A stretch of 64,000 bases of DNA from the NCBI RefSeq assembly GCF_006345805.1, contig NC_043023.1, positions 11,222,001-11,286,000 of the forward strand. The letters run 5' to 3'. Both the position numbers and the translations under genes were made by a program. Below, piece after piece: positions 34,918 to 44,681 of the stretch (position 1 is the stretch's first letter; each line of letters begins with the position of its first letter). The notes beneath the pieces were generated by a model that was given only the letters and a program-made list of their open reading frames with translations, was not told where the DNA came from and did not search any database. The stretch is from Octopus sinensis (taxonomy: Eukaryota).

Positions 34918-37900
34918 TTACACTTGTGTATGAATACTCACATGTGAACATAAGAGGCTTTTTTGAGGGAATGACTCACCACAGATATCACACTGATATG
35001 GCTTTTCTCCTGTATGAATATGTCTGTGATGAATCAAGTTAATATTATAAGAGAGTTATTTACCACAGATATCACACTGATATGGCTTTTCTCCTGTATG
35101 AATACGTCTGTGATGAATCAAGTTAATATTATAAGAGAGTTATTTACCACAGATATCACACTGATATGGCTTTTCTCCTGTATGAATACGTCTGTGATGA
35201 ATCAAGTTAATATTATAAGAGAGTTATTTACCACAGATATCACACTGATATGGCTTTTCTCCTGTATGAATATGTCTGTGATGAATCAAGTTAATATTAT
35301 AAGAGAGTTATTTACCACAGATATCACACTGATATGGCTTTTCTCCTGTATGAATACGTCTGTGATGAATCAAGTTAATATTATAAGAGAGTTATTTACC
35401 ACAGATATCACACTGATATGGCTTTTCTCCTGTATGAATATGTCTGTGATGAATCAAGTTAATATTATAAGAGAGTTATTTACCACAGATATCACACTGA
35501 TATGGCTTTTCTCCTGTATGAATATGTCTGTGATGAATCAAGTTAATATTATAAAAGAGTTATTTACCACAGATATCACACTGATATGGCTTTTCTCCTG
35601 TATGAATACGTCTGTGATGAATCAAGTTAATATTATAAGAGAGTTATTTACCACAGATATCACACTGATATGGCTTTTCTCCTGTATGAATATGTCTGTG
35701 ATGAATCAAGTTAATATTATAAAAGAGTTATTTACCACAGATATCACACTGATATGGCTTTTCTCCTGTATGAATACGTCTGTGATGAATCAAGTTAATA
35801 TTAAAGGAGAGTTATTTACCACAGATATCACACTGATATGGCTTTTCTCCTGTATGAATATGTCTGTGATGAATCAAGTTAATATTATAAAAGAGTTATT
35901 TACCACAGATATCACACTGATATGGCTTTTCTCCTGTATGAATATGTCTGTGATGAATCAAGTTAATATTATAAAAGAGTTATTTACCACAGATATCACA
36001 CTGATATGGCTTTTCTCCTGTATGAATACGTCTGTGATGAATCAAGTTAATATTATAAGAGAGTTATTTACCACAGATATCACACTGATATGGCTTTTCT
36101 CCTGTATGAATACGTCTGTGATGAATCAAGTTAATATTATAAGAGAGTTATTTACCACAGATATCACACTGATATGGCTTTTCTCCTGTATGAATACGTC
36201 TGTGATGAATCAAGTTAATATTATAAGAGAGTAATTTACCACAGATATCACACTGATATGGCTTTTCTCCTGTATGAATACGTCTGTGATGAATCAAGTT
36301 AATATTATAAGAGAGTTATTTACCACAGATATCACACTGATATGGCTTTTCTCCTGTATGAATACGTCTGTGATGAATCAAGTTAATATTATAAGAGAGT
36401 TATTTACCACAGATATCACACTGATATGGCTTTTCTCCTGTATGAATACGTCTGTGATGAATCAAGTTAATATTATAAGAGAGTTATTTACCACAGATAT
36501 CACACTGATATGGCTTTTCTCCTGTATGAATATGTCTGTGATGAATCAAGTTAATATTATAAGAGAGTTATTTACCACAGACATCACACTGATATGGCTT
36601 TTCTCCTGTATGAATATGTCTGTGATGAATCAAGTTAATATTATAAAAGAGTTATTTACCACAGATATCACACTGATATGGCTTTTCTCCTGTATGAATA
36701 CGTCTGTGATGAATCAAGTTAATATTATAAGAGAGTTATTTACCACAGATATCACACTGATATGGCTTTTCTCCTGTATGAATATGTCTGTGATGAATCA
36801 AGTTAATATTATAAGAGAGTTATTTACCACAGATATCACACTGATATGGCTTTTCTCCTGTATGAATACGTCTGTGATGAATCAAGTTAATATTATAAGA
36901 GAATGATTTACCACAGATATCACACTGATATGGCTTTTCTCCTGCATGAATATGTCTGTGATGAATCAAGTTAATATTATAAGAGAATGATTTACCACAG
37001 ATATCACACTGATATGGCTTTTCTCCTGTATGAATATGTCTGTGATGAATCAAGTTAATATTATAAGAGAATGATTTACCACAGATATCACACTGATATG
37101 GCTTTTCTCCTGTATGAATATGTCTGTGATGAATCAAGTTAATATTATAAAAGAGTTATTTACCACAGATATCACACTGATATGGCTTTTCTCCTGTATG
37201 AATATGTCTGTGATGAATCAAGTTAATATTATAAAAGAGTTATTTACCACAGATATCACACTGATATGGCTTTTCTCCTGTATGAATACGTCTGTGATGA
37301 ATCAAGTTAATATTATAAGAGAGTTATTTACCACAGATATCACACTGATATGGCTTTTCTCCTGTATGAATACGTCTGTGATGAATCAAGTTAATATTAT
37401 AAGAGAGTTATTTACCACAGATATCACACTGATATGGCTTTTCTCCTGTATGAATACGTCTGTGATGAATCAAGTTAATATTATAAGAGAGTTATTTACC
37501 ACAGATATCACACTGATATGGCTTTTCTCCTGTATGAATACGTCTGTGATGAATCAAGTTAATATTATAAGAGAGTTATTTACCACAGATATCACACTGA
37601 TATGGCTTTTCTCCTGTATGAATATGTCTGTGATGAATCAAGTTAATATTATAAAAGAGTTATTTACCACAGATATCACACTGATATGGCTTTTCTCCTG
37701 TATGAATACGTCTGTGATGAATCAAGTTAATATTATAAGAGAGTTATTTACCACAGATATCACACTGATATGGCTTTTCTCCTGTATGAATATGTCTGTG
37801 ATGAATCAAGTTAATATTATAAGAGAGTTATTTACCACAGATATCACACTGATATGGCTTTTCTCCTGTATGAATATGTCTGTGATGAATCAAGTTAATA

Positions 37901-43900: not shown

Positions 43901-44681
43901 GTATGAATATGTCTGTGATGAATCAAGTTAATATTATAAGAGAGTTATTTACCACAGATATCACACTGATATGGCTTTTCTCCTGTATGAATATGTCTGT
44001 GATGAATCAAGTTAATATTATAAGAGAGTTATTTACCACAGATATCACACTGATATGGCTTTTCTCCTGTATGAATATGTCTGTGATGAATCAAGTTAAT
44101 ATTATAAGAGAGTTATTTACCACAGATTATTTACCACAGATATCACACTGATATGGCTTTTCTCCTGCATGAATATCCAGTATGTGACTAGTTAAAGAGC
44201 TATTGTCAGAAAATGATTTACCACAGATATTACAATGATATGGTTTTTCCCCAGTATGAATACGTTTATGTTGAATTAAGTGGCTATTTCGAGAGAACGA
44301 TTTACCACAGAAATTGCACTGAAATCGCTTCTCTCCTGTATGTGTAGGTCTGTGACTAGTCAAGTGATCATTTTGAGAAAATGATTTACCACAGACATCA
44401 CAGTGATGGGGTTTCTCTCCTGTATGAATGCATTTGTGTTTAGTTAAGTCTCTTTCTTCAGTGAATGATTTACAACAAATATCACAATGATATGGCTTCT
44501 CTCCTGTATGAACACGTTTGTGACGAGTTAAAATGCTATTTTGAGAGAATGATTTATCACAGACGTCAAAGTGATGTGGTTTCTCTTCTGTTTGAATACA
44601 TTTGTGACTATTGAAAGCACTATTTTCAGAAAATAATTTCTCTCCTGTATCAGAATTTTTCATTTTAATTAAATCATTCAT
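34918..44681 (-). pseudogene. ZNF locus 3' (inverted paralog of locus 3) containing the finger satellite
   Basis: ATG 44681 (MNDLIK), six fingers in ORF 44127-44735, then the array, ending SHVSIHTQV* (TAA 34918-34920) as in locus 3. Confidence 0.85.
34999..44127 (-). repeat. 84-bp tandem satellite of one zinc-finger monomer, ~100 copies in three blocks
   Basis: Monomer reads YQCDICGK(*L or SF)[10 protein letters not shown](H/R)IHTGEKP on the minus strand. Blocks ~34999-38870, ~39190-41240 and ~41530-44127; copy number estimated as length/84. Confidence 0.95.

Follow-up and report, generated by a model that had tools for sequence, protein, structure and literature searches.

How a zinc-finger exon can turn into tandemly repeated DNA that is no longer translated, and whether the product has any role of its own, is the question raised by a locus in a 64-kb stretch of the Octopus sinensis genome (hereafter the window; all coordinates are positions in it). 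A first-pass annotation had noted about 100 near-identical 84-bp units inside the body of a zinc-finger (ZNF) gene, most of them carrying a stop codon, and had proposed that a blocked finger was amplified into satellite DNA that might act as DNA or RNA. The reading developed here, to which a probability of about 0.75 is given, is that the array is a young, non-coding repeat of minisatellite scale, that it grew within the last exon of a C2H2 gene in decay, through unequal exchange or slippage, and that it is neutral.

Extent and internal order of the array

The array is read on the minus strand, and its copy number is that of a single assembly. Cut at the Cys knuckle, it falls into about 101 units between 34993 and 44147, each a copy of the same C2H2 finger; this confirms the unit number first noted and agrees within a few bases with the limits then given (34999–44127). 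The unit is 84 bp long, corresponding to 28 aa with a translation that ends in [H/R]IHTGEKPYQ, and has a G+C content of 31%. TRF reports one array (34978–44598, period 84, 114.5 copies, 94% matches, score 16258), and the mean difference among units is about 1.4%. The units carry a CDICGK.(F/L) knuckle, the C-x2-C-x12-H-x3-H pattern and a TGEKPY-type linker, and are thus fingers of the Krueppel type; a run of intact units matches Pfam zf-C2H2 with E = 1.9e-33 and zf-H2C2_2 with E = 2.2e-52. This array of about 9.2 kb is the only one built from this finger in the window, where the other copies are two single units in an inverted paralogue of the gene.

In most units GGT AAA TAA CTC replaces GGT AAA TCA TTC, as the first-pass annotation had seen: the nonsense form occurs in about 80 units, and TCA TTC is kept in 19, which form three runs. 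TAA units retain the Cys and His ligands, and their conserved Phe has become Leu. Exact matches on the minus strand between 34920 and 44160 number 79 for GGTAAATAACTC, 81 for GGTAAATAA, 20 for GGTAAATCATTC and 93 for the YNINLIHH core, with the k-mer GGTAAATAACTCTCTTATAATATTAAC a possible tag for counting the unit. A two-substitution signature (TAA/CTC) that recurs 79 times is far beyond chance and is not sequencing noise. This recurrence, and the presence of the same signature in the paralogue, rule out that the TAA codons stem from sequencing error.

From 5′ to 3′ on the minus strand, the array gene begins with a flank (44682–45196) that is 93% identical to the 5′ flank of the paralogue (21332–21850; 514 columns, 18 mismatches). 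A remnant ORF of 184 aa follows, running from ATG to the first TAA (44127–44681) and defined by the ORF list, the alignment with the paralogue and Pfam matches to zf-C2H2 and zf-H2C2_2. At the 5′ edge of the array a 14-bp direct duplication, two copies of TCTGTGGTAAATAA at 44113–44140 (TRF period 14), gives a first unit of 98 bp and looks like the footprint of slippage. The unit table and haplotypes then delimit a domain of 31 TAA-type units, domain A (41547–44147), which is almost monomorphic: 14 successive units are identical or one base apart, and the mean pairwise distance is 0.9%. Its 3′ end is decayed, with deletions of 1–5 bp in seven units. Next comes an interruption (41218–41546) in which a three-way alignment identifies relics of other fingers, homologous to the paralogue's fingers at 24.7–25.0 kb; its contents are DTCVKSFSE.., SQ.SNLTEH, one old unit resembling YNINLIHH and a further relic, with stops and frameshifts inside them.

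The remainder of the unit table alternates between the two unit types. Nine intact-type units, two of which have 1-bp insertions (40460–41217), are followed by 15 TAA units (39200–40459) and by a second interruption (38857–39199), which the alignment resolves into another copy of the relic fingers and one finger of a kind here called D. Beyond this lie seven in-frame intact-type units (38269–38856), whose ORF of 189 aa, present in the ORF list and recognised by Pfam, is the longest sense ORF inside the array. Fourteen TAA units with mixed CGT/CAT and TCT/TTT haplotypes (37093–38268), three intact-type units (36841–37092) and 22 TAA units, one with TAA changed to TTA at 36252 (34993–36840), complete the series. 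The three intact runs are those already placed at about 40520–41230, 38330–38860 and about 36900–37080. The gene closes with a terminal finger and its original stop codon (34918–34992), an ending (...SIHTQV*) that is the same as in the paralogue (25345–25420) and that also resembles the end of a neighbouring gene at 45899–46897. The 3′ flank (33758–34917) shows inverted homology to that of the paralogue (25346–26304), with 96.2%, 90.9% and 97.1% identity in three blocks.

Above the level of the single unit, the array contains two copies of a macro-repeat of about 2.3 kb, each running from relic fingers through intact units to TAA units, and near-identical multi-unit blocks recur at offsets of 15, 27 and 28 units. 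The segment 35814–36581 matches 37074–37841 (768 bp, offset 1260, or 15 units), and 37253–38212 differs from 39528–40487 by at most three mismatches in 960 bp (offset 2275). The two interruptions, offset by 2347 bp, share derived changes (TGT>TGA and G>V) that are absent in the paralogue, and are therefore copies of each other. Among the TAA units some have CGT and others CAT, the two states that separate the intact from the nonsense finger in the paralogue, which points to exchange between the two unit types. A layered structure of this kind is typical of unequal exchange.

The same internal order bears on whether the array is partly or wholly an artefact of assembly, a shorter real array having been inflated or scrambled and some of the 1-bp indels being consensus errors. 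This is unlikely. The 14 units of domain A that are identical or one base apart would be hard to assemble, several frameshifts coincide with short runs of one base or of a dinucleotide (GAAAAAGCC and CTCT>CT are examples), and no independent sequence of the array was found in the searchable collections. Collapse or expansion in assembly would, however, not usually yield ordered, non-random variation of the kind seen here, with relic fingers, intact units in three runs, recombinant haplotypes, and macro-repeats that resemble one another without being identical. Moreover, the array joins its surroundings cleanly at both ends, each junction having its homologue in the paralogue, where the TAA/CTC signature is also present in single copy.

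The inverted paralogue and the origin of the array

The paralogue (21332–26304, plus strand) preserves the unexpanded state, as judged from its sequence, motif positions and flank homology. At its 3′ end it carries, in order, the intact finger once (25003–25086), two D fingers, the TAA unit once (25261–25344, with the stop at 25279–25281) and the terminal finger. In a window-wide motif scan, the TAA motif was found at one site outside the array and the finger core at two, all in the paralogue. The single TAA unit of the paralogue sits between the same D finger and terminal finger as does the whole array, and is identical to the commonest array unit (28 occurrences), with neighbouring sequence differing by 2–6%. 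From the position of one TAA finger between the same neighbours, the nonsense codon is most likely older than the amplification. The complete identity with the commonest array unit also makes possible a gene conversion from the array to the paralogue, which would reverse this order of events.

The duplicated flanks are 91–97% identical, with about 3.5% substitutions; as units of the array differ by only about 1.4%, the expansion, or its last homogenisation, appears to be younger than the duplication. Homology of both flanks between the two copies indicates that the array expanded in situ within a duplicated gene and was not brought in by a transposon or other insertion. A transposon origin is ruled out by these flanks and by the location of the array between the gene's own fingers.

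These observations suggest a sequence of events in which the ancestral gene would have ended in ...a-b-c-I-D-D-S-T, where I is the intact finger, S its copy with TCA TTC changed to TAA CTC and hence a premature stop, and T the terminal finger. An inverted segmental duplication would have produced two copies, one of which retained the ancestral arrangement. In the other, sequence 3′ of the stop would have been untranslated and so freed from constraint on reading frame or protein length. The I and S fingers are about 97% identical, and the linker and Cys-knuckle segment is almost invariant across fingers; both features would have allowed out-of-register pairing, and with it the repeated duplication of units and blocks by unequal exchange between sister chromatids or homologues, replication slippage and gene conversion. 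The present set would be the outcome: some 82 units of type S and 19 of type I, among which relics of a, b, c and D are trapped. The descriptive part of the earlier account, amplification of a nonsense-bearing finger to some 9 kb in which intact runs are mixed, thus holds. Its suggestion that blocked translation lifted a length constraint fits as well, given a stop that is most likely older, an array that lies 3′ of it and frameshifts in both unit types.

Release from constraint seems to have been permissive but not sufficient, since the paralogue also appears to be decaying (its start codon is out of frame, with a 2-bp deletion) and yet has remained unexpanded. On a smaller scale the paralogue, too, shows the same kind of expansion, in a run of four to five copies of one finger inside a duplicated block of 672 bp. 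The locus provides an unusually clean snapshot of coding DNA becoming a tandem repeat: with an unexpanded copy, in which the intact and the nonsense finger occur once each, 10 kb away, the starting material, the D–S and S–T junctions and the layers of exchange can be read directly. The array supports the view that translation, and not the recombination machinery, limits the number of fingers in C2H2 arrays.

Coding capacity and candidate functions

In the remnant ORF, a 27-bp deletion has destroyed finger 1, and the first Cys of finger 2 is missing; about four fingers look intact, the last of them a D finger, and finger domains are all that Pfam recognises. The gene context is preserved, in that the 5′ flank, the MNDLIK start, the terminal finger and the 3′ flank are homologous to the paralogue. 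The first in-frame stop (44127–44129) precedes the array, which is thus 3′ of the 184-aa ORF. No single ORF runs through the array, which contains about 80 in-frame TAA codons and nine frameshifted units; the indels in these nine include two of the 19 intact-type units, so that frameshifts are found in both unit types. Lying downstream of the remnant ORF, the array qualifies as a pseudo-exon or 3′ UTR, and at most as an untranslated tail of about 9 kb. The sites that vary recurrently are the S/* and F/L codons, an S/F position before the helix, an R/H position between the His residues and a T/A position in the linker, with zero variation at the contact residues Y, N and H in 91 units. The indels, the short ORFs and this pattern of variation speak for an array free from coding constraint.

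Preservation of the Cys and His ligands in TAA units, with Leu for the conserved Phe, raises the question of whether the array is still translated, through recoding of UAA by A-to-I editing to UGG or by readthrough, into a protein of about 100 fingers. Alternatively, the plus strand might encode a protein of 28-aa repeats: the C-to-A change that creates the sense TAA turns an antisense TGA into TTA, and plus-strand ORFs of 210–441 aa stop exactly at the start of intact units. Both forms of translation are highly improbable. Each of some 80 consecutive stops would require efficient double editing or readthrough, and the frameshifted units disrupt the frames on both strands. That one non-coding frame stays open is reasonably likely in an 84-bp unit of 31% G+C, and long antisense ORFs are also seen in the window's ordinary ZNF arrays. 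Pfam gave only summed spurious matches to the antisense product, no single stretch passing and no domain being credible, and a search among 5.8 billion proteins gave one weak match (E = 1.8e-9). Four further non-finger ORFs of the window were likewise without Pfam matches. A protein search with the intact run returned nothing above 63% identity, the most identical sequences being from O. sinensis and O. vulgaris; searches with whole ZNF proteins were saturated by vertebrate KZFPs. Four ZNF ORFs of the window that begin with ATG gave no exact match to recorded proteins.

A functional non-coding element could take several forms, including a long 3′ UTR or ncRNA that gives rise to small RNAs or acts as a sponge for a microRNA aimed at the conserved finger and linker sequence, double-stranded RNA formed with the paralogue, or a DNA platform from which heterochromatin would form over the ZNF cluster. 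The array gene and its paralogue face each other as convergent inverted repeats, with 7.4 kb between them. A 28-nt linker/knuckle segment, CCATATCAGTGTGATATCTGTGGTAAAT, is the only stretch of the unit shared exactly with other fingers; some 20 of these in the window match it exactly over 23-mers, and it also has matches in fingers at O. sinensis and O. vulgaris loci. Precedents exist in mammals, where H3K9me3 at the 3′ exons of ZNF genes rises with the number of tandem finger domains (PMC3039671) and repeated finger sequence bears functional miR-181 sites (bioRxiv 10.1101/2023.09.08.556730). Sharing of the 28-nt segment would, however, be expected of any ZNF gene and is not specific to the array, and the mammalian precedents need KRAB/TRIM28 or miR-181, whereas the remnant ORF has finger domains only. 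In folding tests of three units on each strand, unit RNA was no more structured than shuffled sequence (z = 0.35 and 0.38), and Rfam and tRNA scans of the window gave no matches. In addition, the units are decaying by indels and the locus is the only one known; a pattern scan of metagenome DNA for the array unit gave no match. A functional element of any of these kinds is improbable. Still less probable is that the array, transcribed as a tail of about 9 kb or by convergent read-through with the paralogue and so supplying some 100 copies of the linker/knuckle sequence common to the family (as double-stranded RNA, small-RNA precursor or microRNA sponge), or nucleating heterochromatin, regulates the ZNF cluster.

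The roles first put forward for the array, as a heterochromatin seed, a source of small RNAs, a recombination hotspot or a reservoir of fingers, gained no computed support from folding, Rfam or the window motif scan. In that scan the array finger was absent from the window outside the array and paralogue, and hence there is no sign of its donation to neighbouring genes. Small RNAs or chromatin nucleation would make the array matter more, and the present results give no pointer to either; a regulatory array would amount to a 'decoy' for the gene family that had its origin in a pseudogenised exon. Most likely the array has no function of its own, its neutrality being suggested by the absence of such signals.

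Relation to known finger arrays

A literature search for finger-derived or 84-bp satellites returned only the PRDM9/PRDM7 and MMSAT4 cases. The coding minisatellite of PRDM9 in mouse, human and ruminants resembles the octopus array in that 84-bp fingers of nearly perfect DNA identity follow one another head to tail within one exon, change in copy number and are homogenised by unequal recombination or slippage. PRDM9 arrays comprise 6–22 units, however, which are in frame and vary mainly at the DNA-contact codons −1, 3 and 6 (PMC3890296, PMC4874674), whereas the octopus array has about 101 units, some 80 of them with an in-frame stop, is not translated and varies outside the contact codons. The remnant ORF is also without KRAB, SSXRD or PR-SET domains in Pfam, although upstream exons may exist. 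Pseudogenised arrays with stop codons are found in ruminant PRDM7 and dog PRDM9, where the 627–960 bp sequenced reflect decay and not expansion (PMC4874674); in the octopus, the disrupted unit itself has been amplified about 80-fold and organised into higher-order blocks.

The mouse repeats MMSAT4 and MurSatRep1, listed as satellites in Repbase, are KZFP finger arrays (PMC5363842; bioRxiv 10.1101/2025.02.26.640358). Here too finger DNA has been classed as satellite-like, in clusters shaped by segmental duplication and by tandem duplication of single fingers. MMSAT4, however, is a consensus spanning three distinct fingers, with a 252-bp period, and marks hundreds of KZFP loci, ordinary genes and pseudogenes alike, in which single fingers are duplicated up to about four times, whereas the octopus array repeats one finger about 100 times with an 84-bp period, at one locus and without coding. 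The statement in the first-pass annotation that no such case was known therefore stands for a single-finger array of about 100 copies, none having been found in the literature, but not for its components, as both the PRDM7 minisatellites with stop codons (PMC4874674) and MMSAT4 (PMC5363842) have been described.

The array has the high-identity, non-coding monomers and higher-order structure of satellite DNA. Strictly defined satellites, however, form arrays of tens of kb to Mb, usually at several loci or in heterochromatin, and make up a measurable part of the genome. The word satellite, as applied earlier, is apt for these head-to-tail monomers but overstates a single locus of 9.2 kb in the window; on present evidence the array is of minisatellite or VNTR scale. 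Like Su(Ste) beside Stellate in Drosophila, it has arisen next to its own gene family from a degenerate protein-coding gene copy that was amplified in tandem; Su(Ste), however, is defined by antisense transcription and by the piRNAs it produces against Stellate. The octopus locus also shows that a ZNF cluster can yield a satellite-like array from one of its exons. In cephalopod genomes, such arrays will mislead gene prediction and distort the counting of fingers, and assembly errors and length polymorphism are likely to occur in them.

The family to which the gene belongs is greatly expanded in octopuses, with about 1,800 C2H2-ZNF genes in O. bimaculoides and 2,289 in O. minor (PMC6279123, PMC9795677). 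Octopus C2H2 genes resemble the array gene in being clustered and AT-rich, with multi-finger arrays in single exons and a CDICGKSF...HTGEKPY consensus, but their ordinary arrays differ in scale and uniformity: the other 84-bp finger arrays of the window and of two Octopus loci have 3–42 copies with 72–86% matches between units. Some of those in the window show TRF periods of 168 or 252 bp. The 2015 O. bimaculoides genome paper is reported to have found a tandem repeat of 70–90 bp enriched beside C2H2 genes, and that repeat may include arrays of this sort. Sequence features alone would place the window in Octopodidae: the finger consensus is shared, G+C content is similar, at 36–37% in the two Octopus loci compared and mostly 31–41% across the window, and the interspersed repeats of the window match O. 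sinensis and O. vulgaris loci (220 non-ZNF matches, 80–93% identity).

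A nonsense-bearing finger amplified in a dead exon

The window is an AT-rich cluster of C2H2 zinc-finger (ZNF) exons, with a G+C content of ~31-41% in most 2-kb windows and eight finger arrays, five on the plus and three on the minus strand. One of these arrays is a nonsense-bearing finger that has been amplified out of control in a dead exon. It stands out in TRF as a single outlier (34978-44598; 114.5 copies of period 84, with 94% matches and a score of 16258), the remaining 84-bp arrays of the window having 7-42 copies with 74-84% matches. The ZNF arrays of two comparison Octopus loci have 3-27 copies with 72-86% matches. 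Cutting of the minus strand at the Cys knuckle resolves the array into a single finger repeated ~101 times (34993-44147, minus strand) with the pattern CDICGK-[S/*]-[F/L]...[H/R]IH[T/A]GEKPYQ. Exact matches on the minus strand of 34920-44160 number 79 for GGTAAATAACTC, 81 for GGTAAATAA, 20 for GGTAAATCATTC and 93 for the YNINLIHH core. The first-pass annotation had described near-identical 84-bp units, most carrying a stop codon (TAA units, GGT AAA TAA CTC), with three runs of intact units (GGT AAA TCA TTC) among them; TRF, unit cutting and the exact-motif counts bear out this description, its coordinates and the three runs. Copy number is the main uncertainty.

Read 5′ to 3′ on the minus strand, the gene begins with a 5′ flank and a remnant ORF of 184 aa (ATG at 44681, first TAA at 44127-44129), in which finger 1 is short of 27 bp, finger 2 lacks a Cys, and ~4 fingers seem sound. 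A 14-bp duplication (TCTGTGGTAAATAA twice) lies at the 5′ array edge. Domain A (44147-41547) follows with 31 nearly monomorphic TAA units, its 3′ end decayed by 1-5-bp deletions in seven of them, and is succeeded by Interruption 1 (41546-41218), which holds finger relics of other types. Nine intact-type units, including two with frameshifts, make up Block B, and 15 TAA units Block C; Interruption 2 (39199-38857) comes next. Beyond it lie Block D, whose seven intact units yield the array's longest sense ORF (189 aa), then 14 TAA units (Block E), three intact ones (Block F) and 22 TAA units (Block G), one of which has TTA instead. The terminal finger and the gene's original stop (34918-34920) close the array. 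Single units with intermediate codon pairs occur on the minus strand at 36252 (TTA CTC, the stop becoming Leu) and 42287 (TAA TTC), and arose either by secondary mutation or by exchange between the two unit types.

The inverted paralogue and the origin of the nonsense finger

An inverted paralogue on the plus strand (21332-26304) has flanks that match those of the array gene, with 93% identity over 514 columns in the 5′ flank and 96.2%, 90.9% and 97.1% in three blocks of the 3′ flank. The paralogue contains a single intact YNINLIHH unit (25003-25086) and a single TAA unit (25261-25344), its 3′ order being intact unit, two fingers, TAA unit and terminal finger. Within the window, the TAA motif outside the array is confined to the paralogue, and the finger core to the paralogue's intact and TAA units. 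A finger designated 'D' and the terminal finger bracket the TAA unit or units alike in both gene copies. The simplest reading would be that a duplicate of the intact finger became the nonsense finger through two substitutions, that this finger was single-copy prior to the inverted duplication, and that its amplification followed in situ, in just one of the gene copies. The most frequent array variant (28 copies in the array) is identical to the TAA unit of the paralogue, so the two gene copies may have undergone gene conversion later, which would obscure the sequence of events.

The segmental inverted duplication (21332-26304, plus; 33758-45196, minus) comprises two convergent ZNF genes with flanks 91-97% identical, separated by a spacer of ~7.4 kb that holds another small ZNF exon (28188-28882). 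A transcript reading through both arms would be self-complementary. The paralogue itself appears damaged: its MNDLIK start (21844, plus) is not in the reading frame of the fingers, 1 bp being deleted in comparison with the array gene, and a 2-bp deletion at ~24920-24932 (plus; CCATATCATTGATATC) terminates a 967-aa ORF six fingers early. Both lesions could be real or consensus errors.

Growth, age and constraint of the array

Interruptions 1 and 2 align with the paralogue fingers immediately upstream of its intact YNINLIHH unit, and have in common derived changes (TGT>TGA and a Gly>Val codon) that are absent from the paralogue. These shared changes indicate that the interruptions are copies of each other, 2347 bp apart, and hence that the block of relic fingers, intact units and TAA units was itself duplicated. 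Near-identical stretches extend over 960 bp at an offset of 2275 (at most 3 mismatches), 768 bp at an offset of 1260 and 731 bp at an offset of 2352. The 84-bp units are polymorphic at five sites. A CGT/CAT site tells the intact from the TAA unit in the paralogue, and in the array both states occur in both types, a mixing that is the hallmark of exchange between unit types. Repeated out-of-register exchange between near-identical units is the probable mode of growth, since the macro-repeat, the multi-unit offsets, the mixing of types and the slippage duplication at the edge all fit it. In the paralogue, a 672-bp block of eight fingers, one of them in a 4-5x run, has been duplicated in-frame (23161-23943 and 23833-24615, plus, at most 5 mismatches in 783 bp), a recent amplification that repeats the array's process in miniature.

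Indels are present in nine units, two of which belong to the 19 intact ones, and the intact runs are split into ORFs of 77-189 aa. The DNA-contact residues are invariant among the array units, unlike the variation at contact codons of PRDM9-type arrays. Units differ on average by ~1.4% (0.9% inside Domain A) as against ~3.5% substitutions between the duplicated flanks, so the array, or its latest homogenisation, is younger than the duplication. Neither the indels, the ORF breaks, the variation nor the divergence gives any indication of selection for coding, and together they fit neutral growth in DNA already untranslated.

Proposed functions, known systems and neighbouring elements

The first-pass annotation had held that an array with translation blocked might be free of length constraint and act as DNA or RNA, for instance as a heterochromatin seed, a source of small RNAs against the ZNF family, a recombination hotspot or a finger reservoir. 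This interpretation is supported in part: the loss of translation is plausible as a permissive cause, but the DNA and RNA functions find no support. For three units, RNA folding on neither strand beats that of dinucleotide shuffles (z = 0.35, 0.38), and Rfam and tRNA scans of the whole window are empty. Exact 23-mer identity to ~20 other fingers of the window, and to some in the Octopus comparison loci, is limited to a 28-nt linker/knuckle segment of the unit. Cross-reaction of small RNAs or a microRNA with the ZNF family is therefore conceivable, as it would be for any ZNF exon. On the plus strand, the TAA units form ORFs of 210-441 aa, since the C-to-A change behind the sense TAA also abolishes an antisense TGA; these ORFs terminate wherever intact units start. 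Their product has no credible Pfam domain and no relatives among 5.8 billion proteins apart from one weak hit (E = 1.8e-9), and a unit of 31% G+C is reasonably likely to leave one non-coding frame open. Long antisense ORFs are also present in the window's ordinary finger arrays (142-194 aa; 23506-23934, 24178-24606, 53370-53885 (-), 62535-63119 (+)), where they seem to follow from the composition of finger codons; their frame differs from the antisense frame opened in TAA units.

It is accepted that unequal exchange in 84-bp finger arrays underlies the PRDM9 'coding minisatellite', whose arrays have 6-22 units, in frame, with variable contact codons (PMC3890296, PMC4874674). A PRDM9-type array is translated, varies at contact codons and has upstream domains; the octopus array does neither of the first two, and its remnant ORF holds finger domains only. 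Ruminant PRDM7 arrays retain 84-bp units with multiple stop codons (PMC4874674), and the mouse Repbase 'satellite' MMSAT4 consists of C2H2 finger triplets, with single fingers duplicated at most ~4 times (PMC5363842). At human ZNF 3′ exons, H3K9me3 increases with tandem-domain number, and a role in limiting recombination has been proposed for it (PMC3039671). Octopus genomes contain ~1,800-2,300 C2H2 genes, which are clustered (PMC6279123, PMC9795677). By its sequence the present array is a C2H2 finger array, and its reading frame is not open; its monomers and higher-order structure are those of a satellite, but it is one 9.2-kb locus on present evidence. No report of ~100-fold amplification of one nonsense-bearing finger was found in the literature searched, and the array is rated as an extreme new example of a known event, the pseudogenised zinc-finger minisatellite, useful as an illustration and as a warning for annotation and assembly. 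The 2015 octopus genome paper reportedly describes a 70-90-bp tandem repeat near C2H2 genes.

Exact look-ups of four ATG-started ZNF ORFs of the window gave no database record. In protein searches with the intact run, the highest identities (61-63%) come from ZNFs of Octopus sinensis and O. vulgaris. The comparison loci from these two species have a G+C content of 36-37%, inside the window's range, and the same finger DNA consensus, and the window has 220 non-ZNF interspersed-repeat matches to them at 80-93% identity. A 62-67-bp tandem repeat (GGTGCTTTTTACGTGCCACCGGCAC...) is common to the window (6702-6841, 30932-31089) and both Octopus loci (41486-41646 in the O. sinensis locus L001); it lies within a dispersed element from which similar ORFs derive at 6573-6944 and 33590-33838. 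Together with the protein identities, the G+C content, the finger consensus and the interspersed repeats, this shared repeat identifies the window as octopus DNA (Octopodidae). Non-finger ORFs on the plus strand at 5959-6480, 11657-12022 and 61066-61521 have no Pfam match; on visual inspection they resemble pieces of mobile-element proteins of retrotransposon or helicase type. DNA near these ORFs (for example 61083-61677 and 13273-14443) matches the Octopus loci at 86-92%.
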